Origin: Hydrolagus colliei
Taxonomy: Eukaryota
NCBI GenBank assembly: GCA_035084275.1
Contig: CM068762.1
Location: 11,718,001 to 11,782,000 of the forward strand
DNA: 64,000 nucleotides
Direction: 5' to 3'
Below the pieces are notes generated by a model that was not told the DNA's origin, ran no database searches, and saw only the letters and a program-made list of their open reading frames with translations. The position numbers and the translations under genes are program-made. Each line of letters starts with the position of its first letter. The first letter of the stretch is position 1. This document shows positions 1,752-55,191 of the stretch, piece by piece.

Positions 1752-13026
<11,275 letters not shown>

Positions 13027-22883: not shown

Positions 22884-23565
22884 TTTCTGTGCCGTATTGG
22901 AACCAGGAAATCAGCATCAACTGTGGAGCCATTGAATTTGCCCCTTTTTCAATTTCACTTCATTTGCTTGGTTTCAGACTCTTCTGCTGAACAGGAAACC
23001 GAGCAGTTGGTCAACAAATCCGGTTGATGCAATGAGCTCTCCAGAGCCAAATATGGTGGGGATGTCTCACCCCACCTCCACCCCCGCCCCCCACCCTGCC
23101 CCAATAAAGATATTCAGGTTGTTTTATGCTTTGCTTGCTTTTTTTTGGAAAATAGATATTTGTACGTAAATATACTTGGTACAACAGAAATCTCAACATT
23201 AAATACATGTGTATTTCTTCATGTGGCCGAGCAAGTCCTGGTGAGCTTTTTGTATTGATATCTCTCCATCATTTAAGGAATCCGTCTGATAGCCTGTGAC
23301 CCACAGCTTGTCCTCCTGCTCTTTCCCCTCCGTTCCTCACACGTGGACCAGCTACACAGTCCTCGCGCCACCCCCAGGCAACCAAACTTTCAAACGCCGC
23401 CGCTGGCCACAACCACTGATACTCTCGCTGTAAATGCCTTCTTCCTCTCCCCCTCCCTCCCTCCCTTCCTCCATCTGCCCTCTCTCCCCGCCTTCTCCTC
23501 TATGCACTGTGACCTCTGGCACAGTCACCATTACTGGAAAATGTCTCCACTGATTGAGCAATCTC
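22884..23565 (-). promoter_or_regulatory. Putative promoter module of receptor A, shared with B and C
   Basis: Block homologous to 32884-33315 and 41964-42240. Contains ACAGGAAAC (22991-22999) and ATTGAGCAAT (C/EBP-like, 23553-23562). Confidence 0.5.
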
Positions 23566-25081: not shown

Positions 25082-28000
25082 TCAGACGACTGTAGAATAT
25101 ATGACAGACTCTGAGTTGTTTTGGAGTGTGCTGGCAGCTGGCTTTCTGGCTGATTGGCTGCCTCCTCCTGCGTTGACCCCCTGAACATTAGCATATATAT
25201 CGTTCACCTCAGCCGCCGGGGCAACCTGCACGAGGGAATAGATCACTTCTCCTCCAGGTGTGGAACCCTAAAAAAAGTGAAACTCTGTCAGTACAGCAGC
25301 AAAGGCAACATCAGAAGTTACCAATAGGAAACCTTCACAACTTCCTTCTTCCTGCGTAACGTACTCAACTACTAACTTGGCTTCCAGCCCACAGTTTTCT
25401 CTTAAGACATTCTATTGTTGAGCTACAGATCTAGCCATGATCTAATATAATAATAGAAATAATAATATTCCTTGCATTTGATATAGGGCGAGTTTCCTTA
25501 CTCCACGTGACTAATAAAAATCCCTCAAACAAAATAATAAATTGTTCATTTCAATCCTCGATTGTTTGTGTGGGGACGCTGCTGTGCGCAATCGGCTGCC
25601 ACGTTTCACCCACATACTGTGCATACTGTATATGACTTTACAGTATATTACGTAAAGCGCTTTATGTGAAAAGCGCTATATCAAATGCAAGGATTATTAT
25701 TATTATTAGTGGTGTCCTTGAGGTTTACATGATAAAAAAAACCCACAACAACAACAAGTTAAACTTATAAAGCGCCTTTCACGTCGGGAGGACGTCACAC
25801 ATAAGAGCACATTTGTTGGCGTCTCATGGTGCTTGCTTCTTACCGTTCTGTTCCCCGCTTGATTTTCTAAAGGAATCTTCTCTTTCCCATTTGTACCTTT
25901 TTTAAAAAAACACATATAAAAAAGCACATTTCAGAAGAGACACTTATTGAATTTGAACTTGTTTCCTTATCTAACTTTCGTCTCGTCTTTATACCACACT
26001 TTACGCGTGAAATAAGGGGAGGGGGGGATAGGGGGTTTCTGTTAGTTCATATCAACATTTAATAGTTTGTCAAATCTGATGGAATGTAACTGATAAATTA
26101 AGATGTTACAACACAGACTGAAGTACTCTTGCAACAGGAACAGAGCTGTGTGTTGCACTGTTATTTAAAGTGATTTTAATACAGTAATAATAATAATCCT
26201 GGATTTGAACACAGGTCTCGCACTTGTAAGGCGAGTGCTCTAACCACTGAGCTACAGGAGCTCCACATGAACTGTCTCTGGTTGGCTTACTTTGCGATTG
26301 GAGAGAGAGGAGGAACGCATTCACTGGAGGCAGCTTGATTTGAGTTGGGGTTTACAGTAGACGTTTGGCTTCTATTCTCCAGTTTCCAGCCATGAGTCCC
26401 TAACAGAGGTTCAATAAGTTTGCTGCACAATCAAGGAAATGTATAACGCATTTTGTCTCATGGCTGTGTCAGATCCCTTAGATAATAATAATAATGTGTG
26501 CCTTTGATATAGCACCCTATCACATCAATAAGAGTGCTTCTCATGAATATACTGTAAGCTGAATTGACTGTATAATTTTGTGGGGCGAAACACAGCATCA
26601 TAATAATAATATTTAGGCACACTATAAGATGTGGGCCTTTCCCTTTGGTTTTCTTGTGCCTGAAACTCACCAAACTTCTTGTGCAGCCCCGCCTTAATGC
26701 AAAGGACAACAGCAGCAACAAACAGAAGCAGGAAAACTCCTCCGAGCACGGGGAGCACAATATGCCAGATGAGATTCCTGGGAAAATACAAGTACAGCAT
26801 TTGACTGGATCTTTCTCAGGCGAAACGCGACAGCCGATCCAGCAGCGTCCCGCAGACAACCGTGGTTTGAGCGAACAAATAATTTATTTGATTACTATCA
26901 CAAATACTTCCTATTCAAGCCATGATTAAGGCTGGTAAGTTCATAAATTTTTTTTTAACATTTTTTGCTGTGTGCAATGCCGGACTGAATTTGTCTTAGA
27001 AATTGATTACAAAACTTTTCAAATTTTTGACATCAAACTGGGGTGGTGGGGAATGGTGGGGGCTGGGGTGGGGTTTTGGGAGGGGTGGGAAGAATAATGG
27101 TGAGGATTGTAAAAAAAATTACAGATAAATATAAGAAGAAAAATATAATAATCCTTGCATTTGATATTGGATATAAACAGGATTGTAGAATGGCTGGATG
27201 TGTGGTAGATGAAATTTAGCCTGAAGAAATAACCCTTTTGGTAGGAGAAGTAAATAAGAGAAGTAACTAACGGCATGCCCTGAAAGGAGCTAAGAAGACT
27301 AGAAGGGAAAACGGGAAGAAGGTTTCAGTCCAGGAAGCTCCAAAAGTAGTTGCGATAACAAAAGAAAGCAAATAAATAAGGATTTTTAAAAAATAAATAA
27401 AGAATAGAGTTAGTGCAGTACTTGGTTTATGGGCAGAGGAACCGAAAAATAAGGAATTATTTTATTGATGATGATAAATTTTTCTAAATCCTTAGTCTGA
27501 CCACATTTGGAGAACTGTGCTCAGTTCTGGTCAACATGCCTCCAGATAGGACATTATAGCAATGGAGGGAATGCAGCAGAGATACAGTAGGATATTACCA
27601 CAGTCTTACACGGGAGCCTCGGTATTGGAAACGGTAGAACTTGTAGCCGACCTGCGAGTTGTACTTGTCGGTATCTCGGTAGCTGTTGATGTCCTGGTAG
27701 TTGGACCCAATGTTGTTGATGTCCTGGTAGTTGGACCCAATGTTGTCTTTCCTGCTGGGCCTGGGGACCATTGAAGAAATGGACGGTATCAGCAGAGTCA
27801 ACAACAACAACAGCAACAAAATTACAATCATGGAGCGCCTTTCACGCAGGGAGGACGTCCCAAGTTGCTGAACAGTCAGGTCAGGAACTAACAAGGGAGA
27901 GGGGCAGGGTAGGGGGCAGGGGTGGGAGAGAGTTAGGAGGGGAGGGAGAGAGTTAGAAGGGCAGCAGAAGACACGGTCGAAGAGACTGGCCTTGAAGGAG

Positions 28001-31000
28001 GTGAGGGAGGGAGCGAGGCGAAGGGACTGTGGGATGGAGTTCCAGAGTGCGGGGGCAGAGAGACTGAATAAGAACATAAGAATAAGAAGCAGGAGTAGGC
28101 CATCCGGCCCTTTGAGCCTGCCCCACCATTCAATAAGATCATGGCTGATCTTCTAATCTAACTCCACCTGCCCCGCCTTCTCCCCATATCCCTTAATCCC
28201 TTTAGTAAGATTTTATACCAAAAATATCTGGTGTTTGTTACGGGGTAGAATTCCATACGGCTCCACATTTACAATAACAGTAACAGCCTTTCATCTCAGG
28301 AGGACGTCCCAAGGCGCTGGGGTTTGTGACTCCTGTAATGTAACATTTCAGAGAGTCCAGAGTTTGTCTTAGAGTCTTTCATTCTGTAAATTCTAGAGTA
28401 CTTATTGGGTAGAGTCTGTGATTGAATTAATTGTACCTTGTTCATCATACGAAATGCCTTGCTGTGCTTTACGTGAAGTGAACAGATCTGCGTTAGTTAT
28501 TGTAATTATGTCAATTAACCAGGGCTGTCGGAGAGGCACATAGTAAGTCATATCAAAATTAATTCATCAAGCTGTTTTTTAAAAAAATCTAGACATGAGA
28601 ATGGGAGAAAACGTCCTGTGTAATGTTCCTATTGTAAATGAATAACCCAAATGTGAGTTAAAGGCATTGGTCTCATTGCTTTACTAGTCAATTTCTCCCA
28701 GTATGTGTTCAATGTTACATTTCTTGGCTGAGCAAAGATGATAGGGTTAGGAATCATCTACAGAAATCTTGTACCAAGTTCGAAAGTCAGAGAATCTGAT
28801 TCTACAGCTACAGATTGCTCTTTAATAACCTGAGACAAACGGTGAAATTCCTTCAATGCTGAAAATGTGCAACAAAAACATAAGAACATCGATAGAGATA
28901 GACACTGCCTGACCTGCTGACTGTTCCCAGCCACTTGTCTTGTTTTTATATTTAATATCCTTTGTGTTGCAGTTGTCAACTGTCCCACACCTTGCCAACT
29001 GTTAGCAATAACCTGAGATCTACTCTCATTATCAAACTGCAATAAAAATGGCAATTACCACCGTACCTTCAGCAATCTGTAATTCGACTTCAAACTTTAA
29101 ATTGGAAAACGACTTCCTTATAACACACCAGTACACGCCTCCATCGTTCCTCGTTAGATGATCCATTGTTACTGAAAACATCCCTCGCAACTTATCATCA
29201 CTGATTGACAGTCTGTGTGTTGGAGGATCACCAGCAGTAATCAGAATAGAGCAACTGGAATAAACATCACCTTTACACCAGTATTTTACATTATTCCTGT
29301 AATCCTGAGTATAGCTACAGGTGACAGTGACTGAACTTCCCGATATTCCAGACACCTCGGACGGTCCTGTTAGCTGATATATACCTGTTGGGATATGAGG
29401 AGTGAGTGAGAATCAGTTTCTAAGTGTGAACAGGAACAGTGTCTGTATTTAATACCAAATTAATAATAATAACAACAACAACAACAACAACAATGTCGAT
29501 TGGCATATGTATAGTGCCCTTCACGTAATGGAGCGCTTAAATAATAATATTAGCCCCTTGTCATGTCTTCAATTGATCTGAAAGCGTGTCACAAAATTAA
29601 CTATAAAATCAATTGACTGTATATTTTGTGAGGGAAACGCAGCAGTGAATCGTGCACTGAACTGCACGGCTCCACTCTTCCTCTGTAAATGGGGCAGCGT
29701 CCTTCTTCCCAAAGTGCTGGACAGTCAGGGGCTTGCTACTCTCCTAACGTTACCTGTAGCTCCTCTCCAAATGTACCATTTCAGAGCGGACATAGTTTAT
29801 CAAACTCTGTAAATTCCCGATAGGTATTTGGGTAGAGTCTGTGATTGAGTAAATTCTACCATGTTCTTTAGAAGGAATGCCTTGCTGTGATTCATGTTGA
29901 GGGAACAAGTCTTGGTTAGTCAATGATCTCTGAATTAACCAGGGTTGATTGAGAAGCATGTACTGAACAAGATCAAAATCAATTCTTAACACTGCTTGGA
30001 AAACAAAAAAACCCCATGAAGACTGAAGAAATCTTGTGTAATGTTCCTATTGTAACATAATAAGATATACGTGAGTTAAAGGTGTTGGTCTCATGGATTT
30101 ACTGGTTAATTTCACTCAGTAATTGTTCAATGTTACATTTCTTGGATGAGCAAAGAGTTAAGGTTAGAAATCATTAAAAAATCATTAAAACTCCATGACT
30201 GTGTGTGGGACACTGCTGTGCACGATTGGTTGTTATGTTTCACCAAAAAATACACAGTCAATTGACTTTACATTATAATCTGTGACGCGCTTTGAGAAAT
30301 CTCAACTATGTGATAAAACATAGCAAAGCAAGGATTGTCATCATCTGCGGAAATCATGCAGTGAGTTTAAAAAAAACATACAATCAGATTCCATATCTAC
30401 AGATTGGCATGTTAATATCCCTAGCACTGTAGGTGTTAACTGTCTCGTATATGGCCAACTGTTGGAAATAACCTGAGATCTATTCTTATTATCAAACTGC
30501 AATAAAAATGGCAATTACCACCGTACCTTCAGCAATCTGTAATTTGACTTCAAACGTTAAATTGGATAGCAGAGTTGGTGTCTCTATAACACACCAGTAC
30601 ACGCCTCCATCGTTCCTCATCAGATGATCCATTGTTACTGAAAACATCCCTCGCTCCTTATCATCACTGATTGACAGTGTTTGTGTTGGAGAATCACCAG
30701 CAGTAATCAGAGTAGAGCAACTGTAATAATCATCAGCTTTACACCAGTATTTTACATAATCCCTGTAATACTGAGTATAGCTACAGGTGACAGTGACTGA
30801 ACTTCCCAAAGCTCCAGACACCTTGGACGGTCCTGTTAGCTCATGTGAACCTGCTGGGATATGAGGAGTGAGAGTCTGTTACCAAGTGTAGCCAGAAACA
30901 GTGTCTGTATTTCATACCAAACTAACAATAATAACAACAACATGAATTGGCATTTATTTAGTGCCCTTCATGTGGCGCAGAATGCTTCAATAGTAATCAT

Positions 31001-32883
31001 TCTTGCACTTGATATAGTGCCTTGTTGTGTTTTTGATACATCTGAAAGCCCATCACGGAATAAACAGTAAAACAAATTGACTATATTTATGGGGGAAATG
31101 CAGCAGCCAATTGTGCACAGCTGTCCCACAAACAGTCGTGGATTAAGTGACCAAATTACTGTTATTTAAAACAGTTTTTTGAAGAGATTATTACCCTACA
31201 AAAATGATTTGCCAATAGACGAACTTACTGGGTTCCTGCTAGGTAAACAGAGGTGTGTGTGGAATAAAGAAACTTGCCGAACATTTCACGCTGCCCAGGA
31301 ATCCAATCCAGATCCTCTCAACTTGTGAGACGAGTGTTCTAACCACAGGCCTCCCTTATCCTCTGTAAATGGGACAGAATCCTTCTTCCCAAAGCGCTGA
31401 ACAGTCAGGGGTTTGCTACTCTCTTAATGTATCATTTCAGAGCGTCCATAGTTTGTCAAACTCTTAGAATTTTCTTTCTGTAAGTTCTGTAAATTCTAGA
31501 GCCATTAGTCTGTGATTGAATACCTTGTTCTTCAGAAGGAATGCCTTGCTGTGGTTTATGTTGAGGGAACAAGTCTAAGTCTCGGTCAATTAATGATCTG
31601 TGAATTAACCAGGATTGACTGAGAGGCACGTACTGAACAATATTAAAATCAATTCATAATGATGTTTAAATAAAGGTATACAATAAGATGGAAGAAAGTC
31701 TGCTGTGAGGTGTTCTTATTGTAAGATAATAACGTATATGTGAGTTAAAGTAATAATCTGAGATCTACTCTCATTATCAAACTGGAACAAAAATGGCAAT
31801 TGCCGACTTACCTTCAGCAATCTGTAATTTGACTTCAAACTTTAAATTGTATCGCAGAAATGACTTCCTTATAACACACCAGTACACGCCTCCATCGTTC
31901 CTCGCCAGACGATCCATTGTTACTGAAAACATCCCTCGCTCCTTGTTATCACTGATTGACAGTCTTTGTTTTTGAGAATCATCAGTAGCAATCAGAATAG
32001 AGCAACTGGAATAATCATCACCTTTACACCAGTATTTTACATAATCCCTGTAATACTGAATATAGCTACAGGTGACAGTGACTGAACTTCCCGATATTCC
32101 AGACACCTCGGCCGGTCCTGTTAGCTGACATGAACCTGCTGGGATATGAGGAGTGAGAGTCGGTTACTAAATGTGACCAGGAACAGTGTCTGTATTTAAT
32201 ACCAAACTAATAGCAGTGACCCCACAGACAGTCGTGGATTGAGTGACCAGATTAATATTATACAAATCGTTTATTTGGAAGAGATTATTACACCTTTAAT
32301 GTGATCCCCTTGGTTTGTAATTACTACCAAGTAACCAGAGGCCTGTGGAGTAAGGAAACCTGCCCAGTGTTTCACCCTGCCCTGGAATCAAACCCAGGTC
32401 CTCTCGCTTGTGAGGCGAGTGTTCTAGCCACTGAGCTCCAGGCCTCCACTGTTGTGCTATAAAAATGAGGTGGCATCTTTTTCCCCTCAGAGCGATTAAA
32501 ACCAGCTTTAATCGTGTTCGTTTCACCGTGTCCTGTGTTTAGTTTTCATCAATTTCGTTTCAATGACATGGTCACTTTCAAGCCCCCAAACCCACACTGT
32601 GAGATATCTGATGTGGGAGGACATTCAGGGCAAGAAAAGATAAAACAGCAGAACAAGATACAGCCAGTGAATGTGTGGACAGTGAGACACTCACACTGAT
32701 TTACAGGACGGAGTATCTCATTCTATAAGTGACCAAACCAAAGCCACCCCAGGTTCTGTGTGAGCGCAGTTTGTGTGTCTGCAAACTCCTGCCTGACAAA
32801 ATCAAAGAGTCATTTTTAAAATGGGCCTTACCTGATACTGAAGTTAGAAGAAAGAGAGCGATTAAACCCATGTTCTGCGCCAT
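25082..32883 (-). CDS. Receptor B: CD300/pIgR-like inhibitory receptor with 3 IgV domains, mucin stalk, neutral TM and ITIM tail
   Basis: Leader 32832-32883 (MAQNMGLIALFLLTSVSG); Ig 31812-32135, 30527-30850, 29067-29384; stalk 27610-27760; TM 26671-26777 (NLIWHIVLPVLGGVFLLLFVAAVVLCIK); possible exon 26291-26323; exon 25844-25896 (phase 1-0); terminal exon 25082-25267 (VIYSLV, DIYANV, VIYSTV, TGA). Phases are consistent. Confidence 0.88.
26185..26264 (-). mobile_element. Internally deleted mini-SINE (tRNA head fused to the (ATT)n tail)
   Basis: GGAGCTCCTGTAGCTCAG...GTTCAAATCCAGG followed directly by ATTATTATTATTA. Confidence 0.75.
27400..27600 (+). mobile_element. Decayed CR1 RT fragment just downstream of the B stalk donor; paralogous copy at about 36300-36430
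   Basis: LV.PHLENCAQFWS...EGMQQRYSRILP resembles CR1 LVRPHLEYCVQFWSP...EGVQRRFTRMIP. Confidence 0.65.
27684..27745 (-). repeat. 30-nt coding duplication in the B stalk (TTLGPTTRTS x2); also at about 36510-36571 in C
   Basis: GTTGATGTCCTGGTAGTTGGACCCAATGTT repeated twice. Confidence 0.85.
27800..28250 (-). mobile_element. L2 3' fragment plus adjacent CR1 3' fragment; duplicated at about 36625-37060
   Basis: FSLSAPALWNSIPQSLR...SFKASLFDR plus (TTG)n tail; CR1-type 3' UTR at 28075-28250. Confidence 0.7.
29067..29384 (-). CDS. Receptor B IgV domain 3 exon (B3)
   Basis: Same IgV motif; phase 1-1, 318 nt. Confidence 0.9.
30527..30850 (-). CDS. Receptor B IgV domain 2 exon (B2)
   Basis: Same CD300/pIgR-type four-Cys IgV motif; phase 1-1, 324 nt. 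Confidence 0.9.
31812..32135 (-). CDS. Receptor B IgV domain 1 exon (B1)
   Basis: SVTVTCSY...VKYWCK...SC...RLSISDN...FSVTMDRLARNDGGVYWC; phase 1-1, 324 nt. Confidence 0.9.
32216..32447 (-). mobile_element. SINE, long subfamily, partial; duplicated at 40621-40866
   Basis: tRNA head with CTCACAA loop; shared by B and C, so it predates the duplication. Confidence 0.75.
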
Positions 32884-33315
32884 ATTCGAACCAGGAAATC
32901 AGCATCAACTGTGGAGCTTCTGAAATAGACTTGTAGCCCTTCCGCTATTTCACGTCACTTACTTGCTTTCACTCTTTTCTGCTGAACAGGAAACCGAGCA
33001 GTTGGTCAACACATACAGGAGATGCAATGAGTCAAACGTGTTTTTTGTCCACCCCTCAACAACAACAGCAATAACTTGCAACCAAGAAAGACATTCAGGC
33101 CGTTCTACACTTTGCTACCTCAGCTGGCCGGGCTGTTCTGGTGAGCTTTTGGTGTGGAAATAACCTACTGTGCGCATGTAAAATTTTCCTGAGAATCTAC
33201 CCCCATTTTTGGCCATGGCCTCTCTCTCCCAGCCTTGCCCGCCGCTCCGTGACCTGTGTCAGAGTCACGGTTACTGGAACACGTCTCCACATCCGATTCC
33301 GCTAATTGAGCAATC
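32884..33315 (-). promoter_or_regulatory. Putative promoter module of receptor B
   Basis: ACAGGAAAC 32986-32994 and ATTGAGCAAT 33305-33314; homologous to the upstream blocks of A and C. Confidence 0.5.
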
Positions 33316-34542
33316 CCGCTTGAAATCACTAGGTTACAACTTCCTTAAGCAGACGCTTTTTGCAAAATATTGACTTAAAACAGTAAAAGGGGGAACAAAA
33401 AGATTGTGGTTTTAGGGAGGGCGCCTGTGTAGCTGCACACAGAATCCGTTGAGCTTTCAGTGGTTGCTTTGTTTCCAAGAGAGTTTCAGTCAACAACAAT
33501 GCTTTCAGACGTCTTACCAAGGCAGCAGGGTGTGAGGGCTCAGGGCTGTGAAGGAGTTTGTTGGACAGTCATGAGGAGGAATATAGCGGTAACTGACAGC
33601 CGTGATGGGTTCTCTGACCGAGGGTAGGACATTTAAACTGATCCACTTGGTGTTGAAATGGGCAGTTGGTTGTTTGGATAGTCTGGCCGTCTCTCGACCA
33701 ATGGGCCAAAGGACATGCTTGATCCAGACATGTTTGTGATGTTACTGTGAGGATTCAGTGTTATGAGGTGACACAACGCAACGTAGACGAAGAATAGACT
33801 TTAACAGATTGGAATTCACCGTTAAGTGAGAAACGAGTTGATCCTTACTGTAACCATCTGAACATTTATTACATTTGGTGTGGAACATGTTTCCACTTAA
33901 ACACGTTTGATGGTGACATTTTACAATGTGAAATTCATTAGCATTATCTTCCATGGCGCCAGGGAAAAAATGTTAAAGATCTTCATTTTGCCGGAGTCTT
34001 GCAAAGGATTGTAGATTCCTGCAGGGAATTGTTTGGAGCACTCGCCTGATCAGTGAGGTGACCTGAGTTTGATTCAGGAGGAAACGTTAGGCTCAGTTCC
34101 CTCACTCCACACACCTCTGTTGACCTCTGTTTACAATCCTCTTTTTAAACAAAAATTGTTTTGACACTGCTGTACGCAATGAATTGGGTGCGGCGTTTCA
34201 CCCACAAAACATTCAGTTAATTCACTTTATAGTATAGCATATACATTGAAGCGCTAAAGCTCGTGATCAAAAGCTACAGGAAATGCAAGGACTCTTGTTT
34301 ATGATTATAAAATGTGATGAGTCGTGCAACTGCACAGGGAACAAGAATGGACATGATCTTCTGTAATGAAAGCGAGTGATGTCCTGGCCCATTGACACAT
34401 CAGCTGCTGACCCTGATCTGTGGCCTTCAGTCAGTGATGGTTCTGATCTGTGCAGCCTCGTGCGTCTCCGTGTCAGAAATCACCACGTCTGGGAAACTGA
34501 ACGGAAGTCTCACGTTAACAATGATCCATTTATGTAATGATG

Positions 34543-34584
<42 letters not shown>

Positions 34585-35131
34585 ACACACACGCACCCAC
34601 AAATGCACACGCACATGTACTGCTTTTACAATGCCCTCTCTTATGTAAACGGTTGTAAGGTTATCGGGGGTGTTGAGTTGCACTTAATTACATTGTGGAT
34701 TGGGTGGGCAGCAGTGCTGAGCATCAGTGGAACGAGAGTCATAGAGGATATTGTTGGTAGATATTTGTTAGGTCAGGGTATTTAGGTATACAGGGCAAGG
34801 CAGATAATTGGACTTGAGGTACAGATCAGCCACAATCGTGTGGAACAGAGGATCCGGCTCGAGGAGATGAATGAACGACTTCTGTTTCTATGTTGCTCAG
34901 AAAAGGGATGTGGGTTTCCAAGTACAAATGGGGATGTGAGCACTATCGCCACCTCGTGAAAACAAAGTCTTGGATTGTTCCCACACAGAAGTCTCTCACT
35001 CTTCCCGTCTTTGTGTCATTGAGATACTTGGGCTGCAAGTGAAGCCACAGAGGAGGCTGATCATTGTCTCGCTGCTATGTACAGAGTGTTGTTTCATTCA
35101 GGTGTATGTTTGGATGCTGTGACTTGTGACT

Positions 35132-38100
35132 TTAGGAATTCCTGCCAGATTTAACTCAACCTTACCTTAGAAAAACGCCTTCAACTGTGTTAATGCCTCT
35201 TCCATTGGTTGACGTTGAGAGAATTTGGCATCAAGTGACACAGTGACAACATTCACAAGCAAACATTACAATGATTTGCTTGGTCAGAATTACAATGACT
35301 CGATTGCTTGTTCTGAGATGACAGCAGCCATCAATAAAACCCACTCCCCACGGCAAACTATACAGACACAAACACAATGAAAACCTGACCCCAATCACAT
35401 TTCTCTTCCCAGAAAGTCTTACAATCAATGCTGCCGGTTCCCTAGTCCTCCTGTTGTCCTTACCTCTCCTGAATGGACTGACGCGCTAACATTCTACCAC
35501 GAGACTGTGAGTTTACAGGAATCCTTCGTCGTCTCTTTGAGAACTTTGTGTTGATTACGACTGAAACTGTGCAGAGAGCCAGAACCCCAAAGGTGATCCA
35601 GCGGAGGATGTCCCACACATTCCATTGCCTGGATCTGAACAATCAACAACAACAACAAAATTACATTTATTGAACCTCTTTCACGTCGCGAGGACGTCCT
35701 AAGGCGCTGACGTCAAAGGTGATCATAAGAAATCTGCATCTTTGGCTACAACTTGATTTTTGTTCAGCTCATCCAACTAGCATCAGGTATCACTTAGAAT
35801 AGTGCTGAACACACCAAGCTATTAGAAACTAAAACGCAAATAATCAAGGCTATAAAGAGAACCAATATATTTACGCTACCTTACGCTACCAATGTATTTA
35901 CGCTACGCTACGTGAGGTGCTTTGAGACGTTCGAAGACGTGATTCAACGCTATATCAAATGCAAGTATTCTCATTATTACTACAAATAATTTGGTTTACC
36001 AATTTTATTTGGTTTACCTCCAGAGGAATCGAATCAGGAAGGAGGCAATAAATGGTGAATTTCCATGAAATCTTGGTTGGACCACATATGGAGAACTGTG
36101 TACTCTTCTGGTCAGCATTGCTGCAGAGAGGACTTACCAGCAGTGGAGAGTATACAGCAGAGATTTAAGACAATGTAACCATAGATTATTATCGTGGTTA
36201 CAGCGGCCAGGAAAGACTGGGCAGGTTTGAGCTTCTCTCTTGGGAGATAAAGGTGTTTAAGAAGAGATCTGATAAAATTACTTAATTTTAGTCAGGATGA
36301 TAAATTTGTCCAAAACCTTAGTCCGACCACATTTGGAGAACTGTGCTCAGTTCTGGTCAACATGGCTCCAGATAGGACATTAGGCCAATGGAGGGAATGC
36401 AGCAGAGATACAGTCGGATATTACCAGGGTCTTTTGCGGGAGCCTCGGTATTGGAAACAGAAGAACTTGTGGCCGACCTGAGAGTTGTACTTGTCGGTAT
36501 CTCGGTAGCTGTTGATGTCCTGGTAGTTGGACCCAATGTTGTTGATGTCCTGGTAGTTGGACCCAATGTTGTCTTTCCTGCTGGGCCTGGGGACCATTGA
36601 AGAAATGGACGGTATCAGCAGAGTCAAGAACAACAACAACAAAATTACAATCATGGAGCGCCTTTCACGCAGGGAGGACGTCCCAAGTTGCTGAACAGTC
36701 AGGTCAGGACCTGGTCAAGGGAGAGGGGCAGGGTAGGGTGCAGGGGTGGGAGAGAGTTGGGAGGGGAGGGAGAGAGTTAGAAGGGCAGCAGAAGGCAAGG
36801 TCGAAGTCACTGGCCTTGAAGGAGGCGAGGGAGGGAGCGTGGCGAAGGGACTGTGGGATGGAGTTCCAGAGTTTGGGGGCAGAGAGACTGAATAAGAACA
36901 TAAGATTAAGAAGCAGGATTAGGCCATCCGGCCCTTTGAGCCTGCCCCACCATTGAATCAGATCATGGCTGATCTTCTAATCTAACTCCACCTGCCCCGC
37001 CTTCTCCCCATATCCCTTAATCCCTTTAATAAGATTTTATACCAAAAGCGTCTAGTGTTTGTTACTGGGGTAGAATTCCATATGGCTCCACATTTACAAT
37101 AACAGTAACAGCCTTTCATCTCGGGAGGACGTCCCAAGGCGCTGGGGTTTGTGACTCCTGTAATGTAACATTTCAGAGAGTCCAGAGTTTGTCTTAGAGT
37201 CTTTCATTCTGTAAATTCTAGAGTGCTTATTGGGTAGAGTCTGTGATTGAATTAATTGTACCTTGTTCATCATACGAAATGCCTTGCTGTGCTTTACGTG
37301 AAGTGAACAGATCTGCGTTAGTTATTGTAATTATGTCAATTAACCAGGGCTGTCGGAGAGGCACATAGTAAGTCATATCAAAATTAACTCATCAAGCAGT
37401 TTTGTTTAAATAACTAGACATGAGAATGGGAAAAAACGTCCTGTGTAATGTTCCTATTGTAAATTAATAACCCAAACGTGAGTTAAAGGCATTGGTCTCA
37501 TTGCTTTACTAGTCAATTTCTCCCAGTATGTGTTCAATGTTACATTTCTTGGCTGAGCAAAGATGATAGGGTTAGGAATCATCTACAGAAATCTTGTACC
37601 AAGTTCGAAAGTCAGAGAATCTGATTCTACAGCTACAGATTGCTCTTTAATAACCTGAGACAAACGGTGAAATTCCGTCAATGCTGAAAATCTGCAACAA
37701 AAACATAAGAACATCTATAGAGATAGACACTGCCTGACCTGCTGACTGTTCCCAGCCACTTGTCTTGTTTTTATATTTAATATCCTTAGTGTTGCAGTTG
37801 TCAACTGTCCGACACCTTGCCAACTGTTAGCAATAACCTGAGATCTACTCTCATTATCAAAATGGCAATTGCCGACTTACCTTCAACAATCTGTAATTCG
37901 ACTTCAAACATTAAATTGGAAAACGACTTCCTTATAACACACCAGTACAGGCCTCCATCGTTCCTCGTTAGATGATCCATTGTTACTGAAAACATCCCTC
38001 GCAACTTATCATCACTGATTGACAGTCTGTGTGTTGGAGGATCACCAGCAGTAATCAGAATAGAGCAACTGGAATAAACATCACCTTTACACCAGTATTT

Positions 38101-41100
38101 TACATTATTCCTGTAATACTGAGTATAGCTACAGGTGACAGTGACTGAACTTCCCAATACTCCGGACACCTCGGACGGTCCTGTTAGCTGCCGTGAACCT
38201 GCTGGGATATGAGGAGTGAGAGTCTGTTACCAAGTGTAGCCAGAAACAGTATCTGTATTTCATACCAAACTAACAATAATAACAACAACATGAATTGGCA
38301 TTTATTTAGTGCCAATTCATATTGAATTGGCACTAGTGAGCAGTGGTGTGCCACAGGGATCAGTTTTGGGTCCATTGATGTTTGTAATCTACATCAATGA
38401 TCTGGACTTGGGTGTACGAAGTACAGTTTCCAAGTTTGCAGATGACACTAAGTTAGGGAGAATAGTAAATAGTGAGGAGGATAGTAGCCATCTGCAAGAG
38501 GATATAGACAAATTGGTAAAGTGGGCAGACACATGGCAGATGAAGTTTAATGCAGAGAAGTGTGAGGTGATGCATTTTGGGAGAAGAAATGAAGGGAGGC
38601 AATATAGGCTAGATAGTACAATTTTAAATGGTGTGAAGGAACAGAGAGACCTGGGGATTTGTGTTAGTGACTCGTTGAAGGTGGCAGGACAGGTAGACAA
38701 GGCTGTTAAGAAGGCATATGGGATACTAGGCTTTATAAATAGGGGTATAGAGTACAAAAGTCAAGAAGTGCTGACTAACCTCTATAAGACTTTGGTGAGG
38801 CCCCAGCTGGAATACTTTGTTCAATTCTGGTCACCACACTACAGAAAGGATGTGAAGGCATTGGAAAGGGTGCAGCGAAGATTTACTAGGATGGTGCCAG
38901 GATTGAGGGACTTCAGCTATGAGGAGAGGCTAGATAGGCTAGGGTTATTCTCTCTGGAGCAGAGAAGATTGAGGGGAGACCTAATAGAGGTTTATAAGAT
39001 CATGAGGGGTTTCGACAGGGCAAATAGAGAAAAACTATTTCCACTCGTGGGTGAATCTGTGACTCGTTGTCACAGATTTAAAATAGTTTCAAGGCGAAGT
39101 AGAGGGGAGCTGAGGAGAAATTTTTTCACTCAGCGAGTTGTTCGAATCTGGAATGCATTGCCTGAAAAGGTGGTGGAGGCTGATTCGATAACAACTTTTA
39201 AAAGGGAATTAGATCTTTATTTAGGGAGAACGGGTCTATTAAGCTATGGGGAGCGGGCAGGGCAGTGGGATTGAATCGCTCTTTTCAAAGAGCCGGCACA
39301 GACTAGATGGGCCGAATGGCCTCCTTTTGTGCTGTAAAATTCTATGAATCTATGAATCTATGAATCTATGTGGCGCAGGGTCCCCAAATGCTTCAATAGT
39401 AATCATTCTTGCACTTGATATAGTGCCTTGTTGTGTTTTTGATACATCTGAAAGCCCATCACGGAATAAACTGTAAAACAAATTGACTATATTTATGGTG
39501 GAAATGCAGCAGCCAATTGTGCACAGCTGTCCCACAAACAGTCGTGGATTAAGTGACCAAATTACTGTTATTTAAAACAGTTTTTTGAAAAGATTATTAC
39601 CCTACAAAAGTGATTTGCCAATAGACGAACTTACTAGGTTCCTGCTAGGTAAACAGAGGTGTGTGTGGAATAAGGAAACTTGCCGCACGTTTCACGCTGC
39701 CCAGGAATCCAATCAAGATCCTCTCAACTTGTGAGACGGGTGTTCTAACCACAGGCCTCCCTTATCCTCTGTAAATGGGACAGAATCCTTCTTCCCAAAG
39801 CGCTGGACAGTCAGGGGTTTGCTACTCTCTTAATGTATCATTTCAGAGCGTCCATAGTTTGTCAAACTCTTAGAATTTTCTTTCTGTAAGTTCTGTAAAT
39901 TCTAGAGCCATTAGTCTGTGATTGAATACATTGTTCTTCAGAAGAAATGCCTTGCTGTGGTTTATGTTGAGGGAACAAGTCTAAGTCTCGGTTAATTAAT
40001 GATCTGTGAATTAACCAGGATTGACTGAGAGGCACGTACTGAACAATATTAAAATCAATTCATAATGATGTTTAAATAAAGGTATACAATAAGATGGAAG
40101 AAAGTCTGCTGTGAGGTGTTCTTATTGTAAGATAATAACGTATATGTGAGTTAAAGTAATAACCTGAGATCTACTCTCATTATCAAACTGGAATAAAAAT
40201 GGCAATTGCCAATTTACCTTCAGCAATCTGTAATTTGACTTCAAACTTTAAATTGTATCGCAGAAACGAATTCCTTATAACACACCAGTACACGCCTCCA
40301 TCGTTCCTCGCCAGACGATCCATTGTTACTGAAAACATCCCTCGCTCCATGTTATCACTGATTGACATTCTTTGTTTTTGAGAATCATCAGTAGCAATCA
40401 GAATAGAGCAACTGGAATAATCATCACCTTTACACCAGAATTTTACATAATCCCTGTAATACTCAATATAGCTACAGGTGACAGTGACTGAACCTCCCGA
40501 TATTCCAGACACCTCGGACGGTCCTGTTAGCTGACATGAACCTGCTGGGATATGAGGAGTGAGAGTCGGTTACTAAGTGTGACCACGAACAGTGTCTGTA
40601 TTTAATACCAAACTAATAGCAGTGACCCCACAAACAGTCGTGGATTGAGTGACCAGATTAATATTATTCAAAACACTTATCATGAAGAGATTATTACCCA
40701 TTGAAGTGATTCCCCCTAATCGACCAACTGGGTTTGTACTGACTGCTGGGTAACCAGAGGCCTGTGGAGTAAGGAAACCTGCCCAGTGTTTCACCCTGCC
40801 CTGGAATCAAACCCAGGTCCTCTCGCTTGTGAGGCGAGTGTTCTAGCCACTGAGCTCCAGGCCTCCAACAACAACAACAATTTACATTTATAGAGCGCCT
40901 TTCACGTCGGGAGGACGTCCCAAGGCGCTGAACAAGAGGCGTGTGACACGAGCTGGGAGGGGAGTGTTTGGGAAGGGGTGAAACACGAAGGGGAGGTAAA
41001 AGAGTTCGGGGGTGGAACAAAAGGCACGATCGAAGGGGAAAGTCTTCAAACCGGCCTTGAAAGAGGAAAGGGAAGAGACGAAACGGAGGGATTGAGGGAT

Positions 41101-41963
41101 GGCATTCCATACGGTGGGAGCGGAGAAACTGAAGGCCCGGCCTCCGATGGTGGGGCGGGTCGGGCGGGGGGCTTGGAGCAGGCCAAGTCCTGTTGAACGG
41201 AGGGTCCGGGTGGGCGTGAAGGGGGAGTAGATCAGTTAGGTAGGATGGGGCAAGGCCGTGTAAGGCCTTGTAGGTGAGGACGAGGATCTTAAACTCGATC
41301 CTCTGGAGGATGGGGAGCCAGTGGAGACGGGCGAGGGTGGGGGTTATGTGGTCGCGGAGGCGGGTGCGGGATAGTACACGGGCTGCAGAGTTTTGGATGG
41401 CCTGCAGCCTATGAATGGAGGAACTGGGGAGGCCGACTAGTAGAGAATTTCCGTAATCCAGCCGTGAGGTGATGTAAGCATGCACAAGTGTTTCGGCAGC
41501 GTGGGGGGTAAGATAGTTGCGGAGCATGTGTCTCTGTAAATGAGACGGCCACTGTCAAGCCATTAAAACCAGTTGTTCATTTCACCACTGCCTGTGAAAT
41601 GGCCACTAAGTTTTGTTTGAATGAATTTAGTTTCTGTGACATGATTATTTTCAAGCCCCCCCCCCCAAAACCCACACTGAGAGATAGTTGACGTGGGGAG
41701 AAATTCGGAGGAAGAATAAGGGTCAGAGAAAACAGCAGAACAAAATACAGTCAGTGAACAGGTGGATAGTGAGACACTGACTTACGGAACGGTGTATCTC
41801 ACTCATTAAGTGACCAAAAAAACCAACCCCAGGTTCTGTGTGAGCACCGTTTGTGTGTCTCTAAACTCCTGCCTGATGAAATCAAAAGGGTCATTTTGAA
41901 ACGGGCCTTACCTGGTACTGAAGTTAGAAGAAACAGAGCGATTACAACCATTTTCTGTGCCAT
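35132..41963 (-). CDS. Receptor C: B-like ectodomain (2 IgV + stalk) with an activating-type Arg-containing TM and short tail; the stalk donor is mutated, so it may be secreted or nonfunctional
   Basis: Leader 41912-41963 (MAQKMVVIALFLLTSVPG); Ig 40218-40541 and 37881-38198; stalk starts at 36586 with its donor changed to AAAAG, reading through to a stop at 36357-36359; TM exon 35464-35634 (SRQWNVWDILRWITFGVLALCTVSVVINTKFSKRRRR); tentative final exon 35132-35141 (RNS*). Confidence 0.75.
37881..38198 (-). CDS. Receptor C IgV domain 2 exon (C2, B2/B3 chimera)
   Basis: 318 nt, open frame; 5' part and upstream intron resemble B2, the remainder resembles B3. Confidence 0.88.
38323..39370 (+). mobile_element. 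5'-truncated young CR1 LINE (RT C-terminus and 3' UTR)
   Basis: Uninterrupted ORF: SGVPQGSVLGPLMF...SKFADDTK...LVRPQLEYFVQFWSP...WNALP...FKRELD. Ends in an (AATCTATG)n tail. Absent at the paralogous site in B (about 30965). 5' boundary approximate. Confidence 0.95.
40218..40541 (-). CDS. Receptor C IgV domain 1 exon (C1)
   Basis: 316 of 324 nt identical to B1 by manual comparison; open frame; cag/gtaaat boundaries. Confidence 0.88.
40867..41525 (-). mobile_element. 5'-truncated L2 LINE
   Basis: AETLVHAYITSRLDYGNSLL...LQAIQNSAAR...LHWLPI.QRIEFKIL...KALHGLAPSYL with a (TTG)n tail; absent at the paralogous B site (about 32448). Confidence 0.92.
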
Positions 41964-42240
41964 ATTCGAACCAGGAAATTGGCATGAATTATGGGCCCCT
42001 TGAAATAGACTTATAGCCCTGCCTCTATTCTGGTCATTTGCTTGCTTTCACACTTTTCTGCTCAACAGGAAACCGAGCGGTCGGTCAACACATACAGGAG
42101 ATGCATCGAGCTCTGCAGAGGCAAATGTTTTTGGCCCTCAACAACCACAGCAACAACGACTTGCAGTCAAGAAAGACAGTCAGGTTTTGCCAAATCTGGT
42201 GGCCGAGCCGTTCTGGTGAGCTTTTCGTTATGGAAATATC
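41964..42240 (-). promoter_or_regulatory. Putative promoter module of receptor C
   Basis: ACAGGAAAC 42065-42073 inside a block homologous to the A and B upstream regions. Confidence 0.45.
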
Positions 42241-43363
42241 TCTCCATTATTTCAGGAATCTGTCTTTGCGTGTTTGTTGAGCGCGTTTGTGTCACTGTGC
42301 CGGGAATCCGTTGAGCTTTTCAGCGGTTGCTGTGTTTCCACAACCGAATGTAGGTCATCAAGCGTTCTGAGACGCCATCGAGTGTGGAGGGCACAATATA
42401 AATCTAAGTTGTTGTTGTTGTTGTTAAATCGTTCGATTAAAATGTTTGGCCGATTAAACACATTTTCTGTGCCGTTTTCAAAATGTGGAATTGAAAGTTT
42501 CTCCTATCTCTATTTGACATTATTTCCTCAATTGCGCCTTCTAGTAAACTGGAAACTGACCAGTTGCATAATAAATTCAGTTACAATTTAATTAAATTTT
42601 TCTTGCGTCTTTCGGGTCTAGATGCTCTAGTTTTATTTTTAGAACAGCGTCCCGAAAAGGTGGGGAGGGTTCGGGCCGGGGGTGTAACAAACGACACTGG
42701 AGTGTTATGTAATTACCAGACGTGCCTTTAATAATTGAATCCACGTGACAAATCTCTGCGTGAGTTGAACATGACTTTGCTCTGGTACAGTTCGTGGACT
42801 CGGGCAACAGAAGACGGCTTAGAAATGCGGAGGGTGAGATTTATCAGCGTGGACGTGAATGGTAACGTGTGTAACACTCCGCCACCCTTCACGCCACCGC
42901 CTGCTGTTTTCCTCCGCAAAAAAACTGTGTGGACGTGAAGTTGGTTTTGATGAAAGGGCAGCCGATTGAACACTCTCGGGTCCGATCAAGCCTGATCAAT
43001 TTACCCTCATTTGCTAACATAATAATGATAATAATCCTTACATTTGATATAGCGCCTTACCAAGTTCTTGAGACGTCTGAAAGCGCTTCAAAGGAATATA
43101 CCTTTCGCCCACAAAATACACAGTCAATTCACTCTACAGTCATGTTCCGTGATGCGCTTTGGGACGTCTCAAGGACGCGATCGTATCAAATGCCGGGATT
43201 ATTATTATTATTATCACTATTATTAATATTGATGATCACTCGTTTGGTTAAAGTTGAGGTGAATGAGGCAGCGCTACATAAATGCAGGGTGTTGTTCTTG
43301 TTGGTGATGGCTTGCACTGCACGCTCGGTGTCATGTACTGAGAGGTGCACAGTGAGCCAAACA

Positions 43364-46300
43364 TTACGGTTGGAATTGCTGGGAGGAGAATTCTACCGAT
43401 GGCGGAACAGCTCCTGAGTTGTGCACCTGGATGACGTTATTGTGTCCGTGGACGCCTTTCATTTTGGTATAAATTAGGAAGTCCTGATCCGCCTGCGAGC
43501 TCAGATTATTTGCCATCGCGCTGCACTGGTTATCTTGTCCGTCCTCTCTGAAAGACTTCAACAACAACAACAAAATTACATTTACAGAGCGTCTTTCACA
43601 TCGGGAGGACATCCCAAAGCGCTGAACAGTTAGGTTGGGACCCAAGCAGGGGGTGGTGGGGGGGGGGGAAGAGTCGGGGTAGGGGCAGGGGGAGGGAGAG
43701 TAGGAAAGGGGGAAGAGTTAGGAGGGCAGCAGAAGGCACGGTCGAAGAGGAAGGTCTTGAGACTGGCCACAGTACAATCAAACTCATTTTGTTTTTTAAA
43801 AAAGAAATTTAATTGGATTAATTTCCTTAAACCAACGAGTCACTATTGACGAAAGCAGGCGGGGAGAGCTAGTGATGTTTCATAGAGCGTTTCTTATGTG
43901 AGTTAGGTTCAGCTTGAAACCGCAAACTTTACAGCACACGGTTTGGAAATATTGGATGAATTGCACACTTACAAAAGCTTTGAAGACAGGGTCAAACTCT
44001 TCCTCTTCTGCCTTCCTTTTCCCACCTAGGAAAGGTCCAGGAACGAGATTCAGTGATATTAAATTAAATGGGCATCGTAATTAAGTATACGTTTCTGTTT
44101 AACAAATAATGCTAATAATAATCCTCACGTTTGATATAGCGCCTTGTCACGTCGTTCAAAGTGCTTCACAGAATGTATACAATGTAATCTGAATCGATTA
44201 TGTATTTTGTGCGTGAAACGCGGGAGCCAATTGCACAACAGCAATGTCCAACAAACAGTCATGGATTGAGTGATCACTTTATGGAGAGAGAGGGATTATT
44301 ACCCCCTGCAAAGCGATCCGCCAATTAACTGACAACAACAACAACAACAGCAGCAAAATGACACTTGTATAGCACCTTTGACGTCCCAAGGCACTGGACA
44401 GTCACTGCTTCAGACCCGAGCTGGGTTCATGGGGTGGGGAGGGTAGGGTGGGGGGGATTAGGAGTTGCCAATGGGAGCATCGAAGTGGAGAGTTTTGAGG
44501 CGGGACTTGAAGGTAGCCAGGGAGGGGGCGAGGCGGAGGGATTGCGGGATGGAGTGCCAGAGTTTGCGGCCAGAGTGGCTGCAGGCTCGCCCGCCGATGG
44601 TGGACGGATGGGTCGAGGGTCTGACAACCTACTGGTGTGGAGTAAGGAAACTTGCCTAAGGTTTCGCCCCAATGCCGCAAACTAGACACGAAAAATGGTT
44701 CAGTTTGATGCATTAATTCAGACCGACTCCAGCAAAAGAGCCTGAATTCTGCCTGGGTCAAATGGACGCCAAGGGATTGTAGGTGTATGTTTTGGGCAGG
44801 TGCTCTCTGCTTTGCCTCTCTCAGGGTCGTGACTGTAAATCAACCAACACAGTTCTCTTTGGAAGCGTCACTTACAGACTGCGGAGTGTTTTTCGTATCT
44901 GATGAAGAAGATGGTAATCACCAGGACTAGTAGGATTGAGCCACCAATTAATGGAATCAGCAAAGCAGTGGACATCCCATTGCTAAGAGAGGAGCAGAGG
45001 AATAAGATGCAGTTAATAATAATAATACTAATAATACACCTTATATTTGATACAGCGTCTTGTCACATTTTCTAGATGTCTCAAAGCGCTTCACATACTG
45101 TAAAGTGAAATGAATTTATATTTTGCGGGCGAAACGCGGCAACCGGTTGCGCACGACAGCCTCTCCCACAAACAGTCGTGAATCGAGTTGTTTTTAAAAA
45201 TTATTATTATTTTTTAAACAAAAAATCATGAGGGGATTATTACCCCCTGTAAAAGCCGACCGACTTCAAAGTTAAGCTAAGTGCCCACAATATCCTTCTT
45301 AACCCTATTGATTGTTACACTCATACAGTAAAAAGTGTATCGCGTTTCACAATCTATTCGAAAAAGGATCAAATAATATGTATCTTTTGAAATCGCCATA
45401 GCCATATACACACTATCCTTCTATATTGTGTGTATACACTCTCTCACACACACACCTACCTATATACGCACACAATGTACATCCTCACACAACATAATAC
45501 ACACATACATTGATTGCTTATTTGATATAGCTCACAGGATTTTCCTGACTGCGAGCTCTATGCCTTGATGTGGGGATTGAACCCACAGAATTCTGAGCAT
45601 GCCTTCAACTGAGCCAGGCTGATACATATTAGGGAACGGCGATATATCGGTATATCGGTAAAACCCGATATGATTTTCATATCGGTATGCCGATATAGAC
45701 ATTTTAAAAATACCGATATATCGAAAAACGGTATATCGAGGTAAAAAATCGGGATGCGAGCACAATCAACTTCACGACCCAGAATGCTCATCTCTATACA
45801 CAATGCACAGACCGAGGTGCAAAGCCGCCATCTTGTATTCATAGTCCTCGAATACATAATACAGGTATGCAAGGGGTGGGGGGAGAGAGACGGCTGTGGG
45901 TGGGGGGGGTGAGGGGGAGAGAGACTGCTGGGGTGGGGGGGTGAGGGGGAGAGAGACGGCTGGGGGTGGGGGGTGAGGGGGAGAGAGACGGCTGGGGGGG
46001 GTTGAGGGGGAGAGAGACGGCTGGGGGGAGAGGGAGATAGATGGATGGGGGGGGGAGAGGGGGAGAGAGACGGCTGTGGGGAAGAGGGGGAGAGAGATGG
46101 CTGGGGGGGAGAGAGATGGCTGGGGGGGAGAGAGATGGCTGGGGGGGGGAGAGGGGAAGAGACGGCTGGGGGGGGAGAGGGGGAGAGAGACGGCTGTGGG
46201 GGGGGAGGAGAGGGGGAGAGAGACGGCTGGGGGGGGAGGGAGAGAGACGGCTGGGGGGGGGGGGTGGGGGGGAGGAGAGATGGCTGGGGGGGGAGGGAGG

Positions 46301-54234: not shown

Positions 54235-55191
54235 TTACTGTTTGATGATGATCGTGGAGTACTCTGTTGTTTCGGAAGCCGCTGGGCGCTGGCCGGTGGC
54301 TTGATGGCTTCCTGGCTCTGGGAAGTCTTGACTTTATCGTGCGTGGTGGACGCGTCCTGCGATGCCGGATCGCCAGGGCTGAATTGTCACCGTGCTATAG
54401 GTAACACCTTCCTCCACTTCTGTTGAACAGCTGAGTGGGGAAAGAGCATATTAATAATAATTTATTATTATAATCATCGTCAACGTTGCATTTTATTATC
54501 GTGTGTGTTTTTTCTTTGATGGATTATTATTAGGCGTGTGTGTTTATGTATGTATGTGTGTGTGTGTGTGGTGCGTGTGTGTGTGTGTGGAGTAAGGAAA
54601 CTTGCGCAAGGTTTCGCCTGACCTGCCTGGGATTCGAACACAGCGTCTCACGCCTGTAAGGCGAGTCTCGGCTCTAACCATTGAGCTACAGCAGCTCCAC
54701 AGGATGCCGTGTGACGCGGATTGACTGTGTGTTTTGCGGGCGAAACGCGGCAGCCAGTGTGCGCCCGGCAGCGGCGTCCCACGAACAGCCGTGGAGTGAA
54801 CGACCAATTTGTATTTGACGGATTGACGGCCAGGACACAGGGAGAGGGAAAGGAAGAGAGAGAGATAATAGCTCATTCTCATTTCGAATAGTGCCTTGGG
54901 ATCTAAAATGTTCACCTGAGCAGGTAGGTAAAGCCTTAGTTTAATGTCTGCAAAGAATAAGTGAAGAGTAATAACTTCCGACAATGCAACGCCCTCCCCA
55001 ACCTCTCCCCTCCCCAACCTCCCCCACTCCCCAACCTCCCACCTCGCCAATCCCCCTCCCTCCCCAGCGATGCATTGGAAATCATATGACTTCCAGGCAC
55101 AAGGGTTTAGTAAACCTTGAAGACTCTTGCATTCTTACCACCGAGTTTGAAGTTGGGATGGAGTTCTCCACTTGTGGTGTTATGTCTTTAC
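54235..55191 (-). pseudogene. Orphaned or decaying cytoplasmic exons of receptor E
   Basis: 53-nt exon 55139-55191 (same length and phase as B's 25844-25896 exon). Terminal-type exon 54235-54430 has VTYSTV and TEYSTI in one frame, interrupted by TAA at 54334-54336. Confidence 0.55.

Follow-up and report, generated by a model that had tools for sequence, protein, structure and literature searches.

Near-identical ectodomain exons beside ITIM-type and arginine-type signalling modules in two adjacent CD300/pIgR-like receptor genes of Hydrolagus colliei

Do two neighbouring receptor genes that share almost the same ectodomain and differ in their membrane modules make up an inhibitory/activating pair, and how did their ectodomains come to be so alike? 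The question is raised by a 64,000-nucleotide stretch of the Hydrolagus colliei genome (assembly GCA_035084275.1, contig CM068762.1, positions 11,718,001 to 11,782,000), called the window below and numbered from its first base. Two of its immunoglobulin (Ig) receptor genes, B (32883-25082) and C (41963-35460), are adjacent on the minus strand, and a preliminary description of the window took them for paired receptors produced by a recent segmental duplication. We read them as old tandem paralogues with homogenised ectodomains, B of inhibitory type and C of activating type, and give this reading as a whole a probability of about 0.6. The features of the two genes are listed here; all their exons are on the minus strand with AG/GT boundaries, and a slash in a donor marks the exon end.

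Gene B
32832..32883, minus: exon 1, ATG and signal peptide MAQNMGLIALFLLTSVS(G); donor CAG/GTAAGG, phase 1
31812..32135, minus: Ig exon 1, V-set of CD300/pIgR type, phase 1-1
30527..30850, minus: Ig exon 2, no counterpart in C
29067..29384, minus: Ig exon 3, pairs with C Ig exon 2 (306/318 nt)
27610..27751, minus: stalk exon, Thr/Ser/Pro-rich, phase 1 to 2; donor CGT/GTAAGA at 27610
26671..26777, minus: uncharged transmembrane (TM) exon, phase-2 acceptor, phase-1 donor
25844..25896, minus: cytoplasmic exon (G)TNGKEKIPLENQAGNRT, placed by exon enumeration and elasmobranch tail alignment
25082..25267, minus: last exon with VIYSLV, DIYANV and VIYSTV; coding 25267-25085, stop TGA 25084-25082

Gene C
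41912..41963, minus: exon 1, signal peptide MAQKMVVIALFLLTSVP(G)
40218..40541, minus: Ig exon 1, 316/324 nt identical to B Ig exon 1
38309..39274, plus: reverse-transcriptase fragment (Pfam RVT_1) of a long interspersed nuclear element (LINE) in a C intron, in the place of the B Ig exon 2 unit
37881..38198, minus: Ig exon 2
36425..36577, minus: stalk exon, candidate ends 36478 (phase 2) and 36425 (phase 1)
35638..35710, minus: 3' tail of an interspersed LINE/SINE (SINE, short interspersed nuclear element), ending in (TTG)n
35460..35634, minus: Arg-type TM exon (R)SRQWNVWDILRWITFGVLALCTVSVVINTKFSKRRRR...QER, phase-2 acceptor, stop TAA 35462-35460

Duplicated blocks in the window were found by self-blastn and repeat searching, and V exons by tblastn with one Ig exon. 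The self-comparison pairs 27459-29480 with 36285-38290 (94.5% identity with gaps), 30970-32448 with 39368-40867 (95.3%) and, more weakly, 32537-33162 with 41610-42238 (77.6%), and it ends in an outermost 37-bp block at 33442-33477 / 42304-42340; the extent given in the preliminary description, 27.47-33.48 and 36.30-42.34 kb, is thus matched down to this last block. A recount of the first Ig exons (32135-31812 against 40541-40218) returned exactly the 316 identical nucleotides of 324 claimed before, with 100/107 amino acids identical, and the third Ig exon of B and the second of C agree at 97/105 amino acids. The shared body of Ig exons, introns and stalk is 96-97% identical, and the stalks are nearly so up to position 27656. 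The genes cease to be homologous at 27459/36285, some 150 bp past the stalk exon on its 3' side, and tblastn gave no cross-match between the TM/tail modules of B and C, in keeping with the earlier statement that the likeness stops just past the stalk and that the modules are unrelated. The middle Ig unit of B is without a counterpart in C, so that B has three Ig exons and C two.

The module of gene B is complete. Enumeration of exons bridging phase 1 to phase 0 supplied the small cytoplasmic exon, and the eight exons together give an intact open reading frame (ORF) of 501 amino acids with canonical splice sites throughout. The TM segment, IWHIVLPVLGGVFLLLFVAAVVLCI, is without charge, and VIYSLV and VIYSTV in the last exon (both reported previously) fit the consensus (S/I/V/L)xYxx(I/V/L) of immunoreceptor tyrosine-based inhibitory motifs (ITIMs). 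The TM and tail are collinear with those of pIgR-like proteins of Heptranchias perlo (P0011, E=3e-17) and Hemitrygon akajei (P0030, E=5e-12), and these alignments cover the bridging cytoplasmic exon; Heptranchias is aligned with all three tyrosine motifs, EVIYSLV, DIYANV and SVIYSTV, and Hemitrygon with the two ITIMs. The ORF, the canonical sites and the tail alignments make B a well-supported inhibitory-type receptor gene, and it is very likely an ITIM receptor.

The module of gene C is an ORF, 35634-35464, that ends in ...NVWDILRWITFGVLALCTVSVVINTKFSKRRRRIPVNSQSRGRMLARQSIQER and a stop and has no Tyr; the basic residue inside its TM helix is the Arg at position 3 of ILRWITFGVLALCTVSVVI, so the charged TM and short basic tail described before are read here as well. 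A 59-codon ORF is by itself not significant, hydrophobic stretches are frequent (125 in the window at Kyte-Doolittle hydropathy >= 1.9) and the acceptor region merges into a retroelement tail, all of which would suit a chance ORF, or an exon of some other gene, that left C with no TM module of its own. The exon is, however, unique sequence outside the repeats, and the interval from C to B has no other minus-strand gene to which it could belong. Its acceptor is usable and in phase 2, like those of the TM exons of A, B and D, and when both strands of the window were scanned for ORFs resembling TM exons, only the TM exons of A, B, D and C and about five others came up, with a chance expectation of about 0.12 in the 3.2-kb region downstream of C. 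Taken alone, such intrinsic evidence is moderate.

Homology carries the greater weight. Two word-index protein searches, one with the full C model and one with the TM exon alone, had been without a match, a result overturned by an exhaustive HMMER search with the C model, which found the module W-x3-R-W-x2-F on pIgR-like/CMRF35-like ectodomains in RefSeq proteins of seven elasmobranchs: Hemitrygon akajei, Leucoraja erinacea, Carcharodon carcharias, Mobula hypostoma, Narcine bancroftii, Hemiscyllium ocellatum (VWDVIRW against VWDILRW in C) and Scyliorhinus canicula (a clean 198-aa "CMRF35-like molecule 3"). Sturgeon has a looser version. Pairwise BLASTP of the C TM exon gave 1e-8 with Hemiscyllium and 3e-7 with Hemitrygon, and the W, R, W and F of the motif are invariant in an alignment of nine TM sequences. 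The exon architecture is likewise shared: at the Hemitrygon stingray locus a phase-2 stalk donor, ATCAG/GTTAGT, is followed by an Arg-type TM exon with a phase-2 acceptor, the acceptor of the Carcharodon Arg-type exon is also of phase 2, and the stingray exon ends ...FQR and stop, AGG TAA, as the C exon ends ...QER and stop, again AGG TAA. Because the same module is present in the RefSeq proteins of seven elasmobranchs, which we regard as decisive, there is little doubt that 35634-35464 is a genuine family TM exon; the chance-ORF or foreign-gene explanation is largely refuted and improbable. Of the earlier definition of a pair, near-identical ectodomain exons and an ITIM-bearing partner are seen in B and C, a charged-TM exon lies downstream of the C ectodomain, and both modules are conserved in elasmobranchs.

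Is C then a working activating partner? Several observations weigh against the reading given at the outset. An Asp stands three residues before the Arg in the C TM segment (Hemiscyllium has the same Asp), a gap of about 9 nt separates the end of the retroelement tail from the acceptor AG of the TM exon, and no adaptor gene is present in the 64-kb window. The Ig exons of B and C differ by 17.5 non-synonymous and 2.5 synonymous changes, a ratio not distinguishable from neutral, which does not indicate purifying selection on C since the homogenisation. Most directly, the stalk donor GTAAGA of B is gone in C, where GTGTAAGA has become GCAAAAGA (in longer context, GTGTAAGACTGTGG in B and GCAAAAGACCCTGG in C). 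The remaining ways for the C stalk to end, with approximate donor scores from a rough position-weight matrix of general vertebrate frequencies, are as follows.

Exon end 36478, minus: CAG/GTCGGC, phase 2, score 0.5; TM exon in frame, 322-aa model M1; site also in B
Exon end 36425, minus: CTG/GTAATA, phase 1, score 0.9; frameshift, soluble ...DPGNGMCGTSSAGSPLGFWLSAQFQS and stop, model M2
Exon end 36412, minus: ACT/GTATCT, phase 2, score -4.3; TM exon in frame, very poor site
No donor used, minus: read-through to ...GNIRLYLCCIPSIGLMSYLEPC and stop, model M3

CAG/GTCGGC is the sole phase-2 donor that scores 0 or more, and in B it is an alternative phase-2 donor with the exon end at 27652; its rival CTG/GTAATA leads to a frameshift and an early stop. 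A C model that joined the most consensus-like donor, 36425 (phase 1), to the phase-2 acceptor of exon 35634 was rejected for this frameshift, and a search for an alternative C TM exon that would fit the phase-1 donor found none. The charged-TM exon of C is accordingly present, intact and conserved; its joining in frame needs the weak donor at 36478, and the competing donor at 36425 breaks the frame.

These facts allow C to be a once-activating partner in decay, or one that has come to make a secreted form. With the B-type donor lost, the product would be ...AKDPDPGNGMCGTSSAGSPLGFWLSAQFQS and stop from the 36425 donor or the read-through form above, both anchorless; the five or six B/C substitutions there cluster exactly over the donor of B, relaxed constraint would fit the dN/dS of about 2, and soluble members are known in related fish families, such as carp SITR (PMC3031540). 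On the other side, every exon of C has an open frame and canonical sites, the TM exon is intact, with the TM frame as the sole one open between its acceptor and AGG TAA (the TAA overlapping an AG/GTAAGG), the phase-2 donor at 36478 has been kept with a perfect CAG on its exon side, and the approximate donor scores lie less than 1 bit apart. A decaying or secreted C is therefore possible and a minority view. To judge from its exons, C is by descent and architecture an activating-type gene, and the odds that it currently makes a membrane-bound, adaptor-coupled form seem slightly better than even.

How the pair became so alike is indicated by the layering of its identity. The promoter, the leader and the 5' part of intron 1 are 81% identical between B and C, the body 96-97%, rising to near 99% just before mid-stalk, and the last 190 bp 89%, with no identity beyond; Fisher tests on the 81, 96-97 and 89% layers gave p = 5e-29 and 7e-5. 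The promoter and leader of the neighbouring gene A are also 81% identical to those of B, as close as those of C. The layered identity, together with this A-B promoter value, argues for old tandem paralogues in which the stretches coding for the ectodomain have recently been homogenised and not for a single recent duplication. What the preliminary description called a recent segmental duplicate holds for the body and fails for the promoter and leader, and is better described as concerted evolution of old paralogues. The layers point to gene conversion or unequal exchange as the probable process, and such data do not show which of B and C was donor and which recipient; the proposal that C arose when the ectodomain of B was grafted onto an activating module is a candidate direction only.

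A comparable tandem pair is present in the great white shark. Carcharodon has two stalk exons in tandem that are 100% identical, the first followed by an Arg-type exon and the second by an ITIM-type TM and tail, and in about 140 residues the predicted ectodomains show some 2 differences (~99% identical). The order of transcription, Arg-type gene and then ITIM-type gene, is the same in Carcharodon as in C and B. Homogenisation of the ectodomain appears to have occurred independently in the two lineages.

Could B and C be two uncollapsed haplotypes of one gene? The 96-97% identity of their bodies would fit. The Ig exons nevertheless number three in one copy and two in the other, the LINE insert is in C alone, the promoters are only 81% identical and the 3' modules unrelated, no gap separates the copies (runs of N are found only at 56.9-57.5 and 63.5-63.7 kb), and Carcharodon shows the same tandem of two modules. 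Given copies that differ in exon number, LINE insert, flanks and by 3-19% in sequence, a haplotype artefact is very unlikely.

A third copy of the segment that follows the stalk lies downstream of the one belonging to C, at 36068..36164 on the minus strand (about 100 bp, 77% identical). Its match to B continues beyond the B/C breakpoint, and it holds an ORF ...TTIIIYGYIVLNLCCILSTAG/GTAAGT. Possibly an older 3' region of C has survived here as a relic; an ITIM relic was sought downstream of C and not found.

The family to which the pair belongs is clear from its Ig domains. The Pfam V-set model PF07686 is matched at 148 bits (cut-off 26), in B over three stretches, and all five Ig exons of B and C carry VTC...KYWCKG...SC...YWC with four Cys, that is, two disulfides. 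Two disulfides with (K/R)YWC and YWC motifs are a feature of CD300/pIgR-type V domains (PMC3031540). Among solved structures the best relatives are mouse and human pIgR (domains D1, D4 and D5, E 1e-41 to 1e-37), followed by CLM-1/CD300F of the CD300 type (E ~1e-23), and antibody V domains give 1e-5 or weaker. Identity to the best protein matches is only about 40-47%, and the protein search found no orthologue of B or C above 50%. The skate MDIRs are activating and inhibitory multigene families of CD300/pIgR type, and such families are found in zebrafish too (PMC3031540). By homology B and C are adjacent members of a cartilaginous-fish pIgR-like/CD300-like multigene family of the kind described in skate as MDIRs. 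With that family they share tandem V domains of CD300/pIgR type and a multigene cluster of ITIM-bearing and charged-TM members, and proteins of Hemitrygon, Carcharodon, Heptranchias, Hemiscyllium, Scyliorhinus, Leucoraja, Mobula and Narcine share the Arg-type TM motif and the ITIM tail. The likeness to skate MDIRs specifically rests on their published description (PMC3031540), the sequences compared being Leucoraja RefSeq pIgR-like proteins. Unlike those elasmobranch proteins, B and C appear to come from a chimaera-like fish, and their Ig domains reach only the 40-47% identity just given.

Mammalian CD300 receptors have the same V domain with two disulfides and a YWC motif, and CD300A and CD300C likewise set an ITIM member beside a charged-TM member with a very similar ectodomain. 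They differ in having one V domain each, against three in B and two in C, and orthology is not established. Activating CD300 members of mammals have Glu or Lys in the TM segment and not a W-x3-R-W motif. pIgR, the best match among solved structures, has repeated V domains of the same subtype, but its long cytoplasmic tail for transcytosis and its (mammalian) five-domain architecture are missing from B and C, which have ITIM or charged-TM modules instead. KIR, LILR, SIRP, PILR and Siglec-5/14 resemble the pair in their near-identical ectodomains, opposite modules and conversion tracts that end before the TM exon, and Fc-alpha-RI, GPVI, NKp46 and LILRA in an Arg within the N-terminal third of the TM segment (ILRW in C). 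In the latter receptors, which couple to FcR-gamma through an outer-leaflet TM Arg, the motif is LIRM or LLRM. Both the KIR/LILR-type and the FcR-gamma-coupled receptors belong to unrelated Ig subfamilies (C2/I-type, encoded in the leukocyte receptor complex), so the resemblance would be functional only.

The observed gene structures, motifs, identity layers and cross-species conservation of both modules and of the exon architecture suggest a mechanism, one that presumes expression of both genes, the splice choice at C, binding of adaptor and phosphatases, and a ligand common to B and C. B would be a type I receptor with three V domains whose tail ITIMs, once phosphorylated on Tyr, would recruit SH2 phosphatases and so dampen signalling. 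C would have two almost identical V domains and the same stalk, followed by the Arg-type TM exon and a short basic tail; with that exon spliced in frame, the membrane Arg could pair with an acidic adaptor bearing an immunoreceptor tyrosine-based activation motif (ITAM), candidates being of FcR-gamma/CD3-zeta or DAP12 type, and so lead to activation. The ectodomain-coding bodies would have been homogenised recently by gene conversion or unequal exchange, and a homogenised tract that stops just 3' of the stalk exon would leave each gene its own signalling module. We only infer that C couples to FcR-gamma, that B and C share a ligand and that the "pathogen decoy" rationale offered earlier applies.

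The arrangement is already known from sharks, rays and mammals and is not a new kind of system; both B-type and C-type modules are present in public shark and ray gene models. Modestly new are the invariant Arg motif across Chondrichthyes, the homogenisation of ectodomains in two lineages and the lost donor of C. The locus offers, in a chimaera-like cartilaginous fish, a clean genomic example of how paired immune receptors are built and maintained: old tandem paralogues retain separate signalling exons, and homogenisation of the exons that bind ligand breaks off sharply just past the stalk. Read alongside the shark and ray loci, the locus shows conservation of both signalling modules, and of the phases of their exons, throughout Chondrichthyes, and it singles out one invariant Arg as a candidate residue for adaptor coupling in early jawed vertebrates. 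More speculatively, the W-x3-R-W-x2-F exon might be an ancient adaptor-coupling module common to chimaera-like fish, elasmobranchs and perhaps sturgeon, older than their split and kept all that time beside ITIM-type genes while gene conversion repeatedly copied ectodomains across, as in the window and separately in the great white shark, with C perhaps just switched towards a soluble decoy by the loss of its stalk donor. Were this tentative extension true, no older paired-receptor system maintained in step would be on record.

At least five genes for Ig receptors of CD300/pIgR type, A-E with B and C among them, lie head-to-tail in the window, all on the minus strand. The tblastn search with one Ig exon placed their V exons as follows.

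21958-21070, minus: gene A, two V exons
32135-29067, minus: gene B, three V exons
40541-37881, minus: gene C, two V exons
48552-47528, minus: gene D, two V exons
57965-57678, minus: gene E, one V exon, beside masked runs of N

Gene A (18298-23060) has divergent V exons at 21958-21734 and 21354-21070, an uncharged TM exon at about 19805-19691 and a tail at 18438-18298 with ITYATL and VEYSTV. In its promoter/leader-like copy near 22900 the first ATG is changed to ACG and the leader donor to CGG/GTCTGT. In gene D (42500-48552) the TM exon lies near 44982-44877, and a probable cytoplasmic exon starts at 44025 (GKRKAEEEEFDPVFKAF). Its overall identity to Callorhinchus milii XP_007897677 is 67% (81% between the second Ig exon of D and a C. 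milii protein), and since the tail of XP_007897677 has NLYSTV and VEFSTL, D is also of inhibitory type. Gene E (54240-57965) has tail exons with VTYSTV and TEYSTI; in its TM exon a TAA in frame directly follows ...LIVKR, and a GT donor is lacking, so that E may be a pseudogene or a very short-tailed form. A tblastx comparison among the 3' regions of genes A-E gave mostly repeat noise.

The RefSeq proteins XP_041051254 (Carcharodon carcharias CM029973.1, locus stretch 18717-66237) and XP_072886348 (Hemitrygon akajei CM108239.1, locus stretch 10001-62925) each contain two leaders and two ectodomains. Each appears to merge two neighbouring receptor genes, the shark model fusing an Arg-type gene to an ITIM-type gene, and the conservation of the modules across species helps to correct such merged or "uncharacterized" models.

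Between the Ig exons and the TM exon of D, at 45900-46510, is a G-rich imperfect tandem array of about 19 GGGGGAGAGAGACGGCT-like copies with a period of about 27-32 nt, and each of the three frames of the minus strand is open through it. Copies of a SINE about 310 bp long with a tRNA head are abundant (for example 5150-5457, 9991-10299, 11768-12105 and 49422-49745), and Rfam and tRNA scans of the window returned only such tRNA-derived SINE heads. The LINE/SINE 3' tail ...GGGACGTCCTCCCGACGTGAAAGGCGCT...GTAATTTTG(TTG)n has 9 copies in the window (for example 27800-27871, 36629-36694, 40866-40931 and 43558-43625) and is absent from four elasmobranch loci, about 300 kb in total. With the C. milii identity of gene D, this points to a cartilaginous fish, probably a holocephalan, and bears out the cartilaginous-fish reading of the preliminary description. 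Finally, a conserved block is found upstream of the A, B and C leaders at 22900-23010, 32900-33000 and 41980-42090 (TTGACCAACTGCTCGGTTTCCTGTTCAGCAGAAAAG.GTGAAAGCAAG). Its TTCC and GAAA..GAAA motifs resemble ETS/IRF composite sites, and it may be a shared leukocyte promoter.

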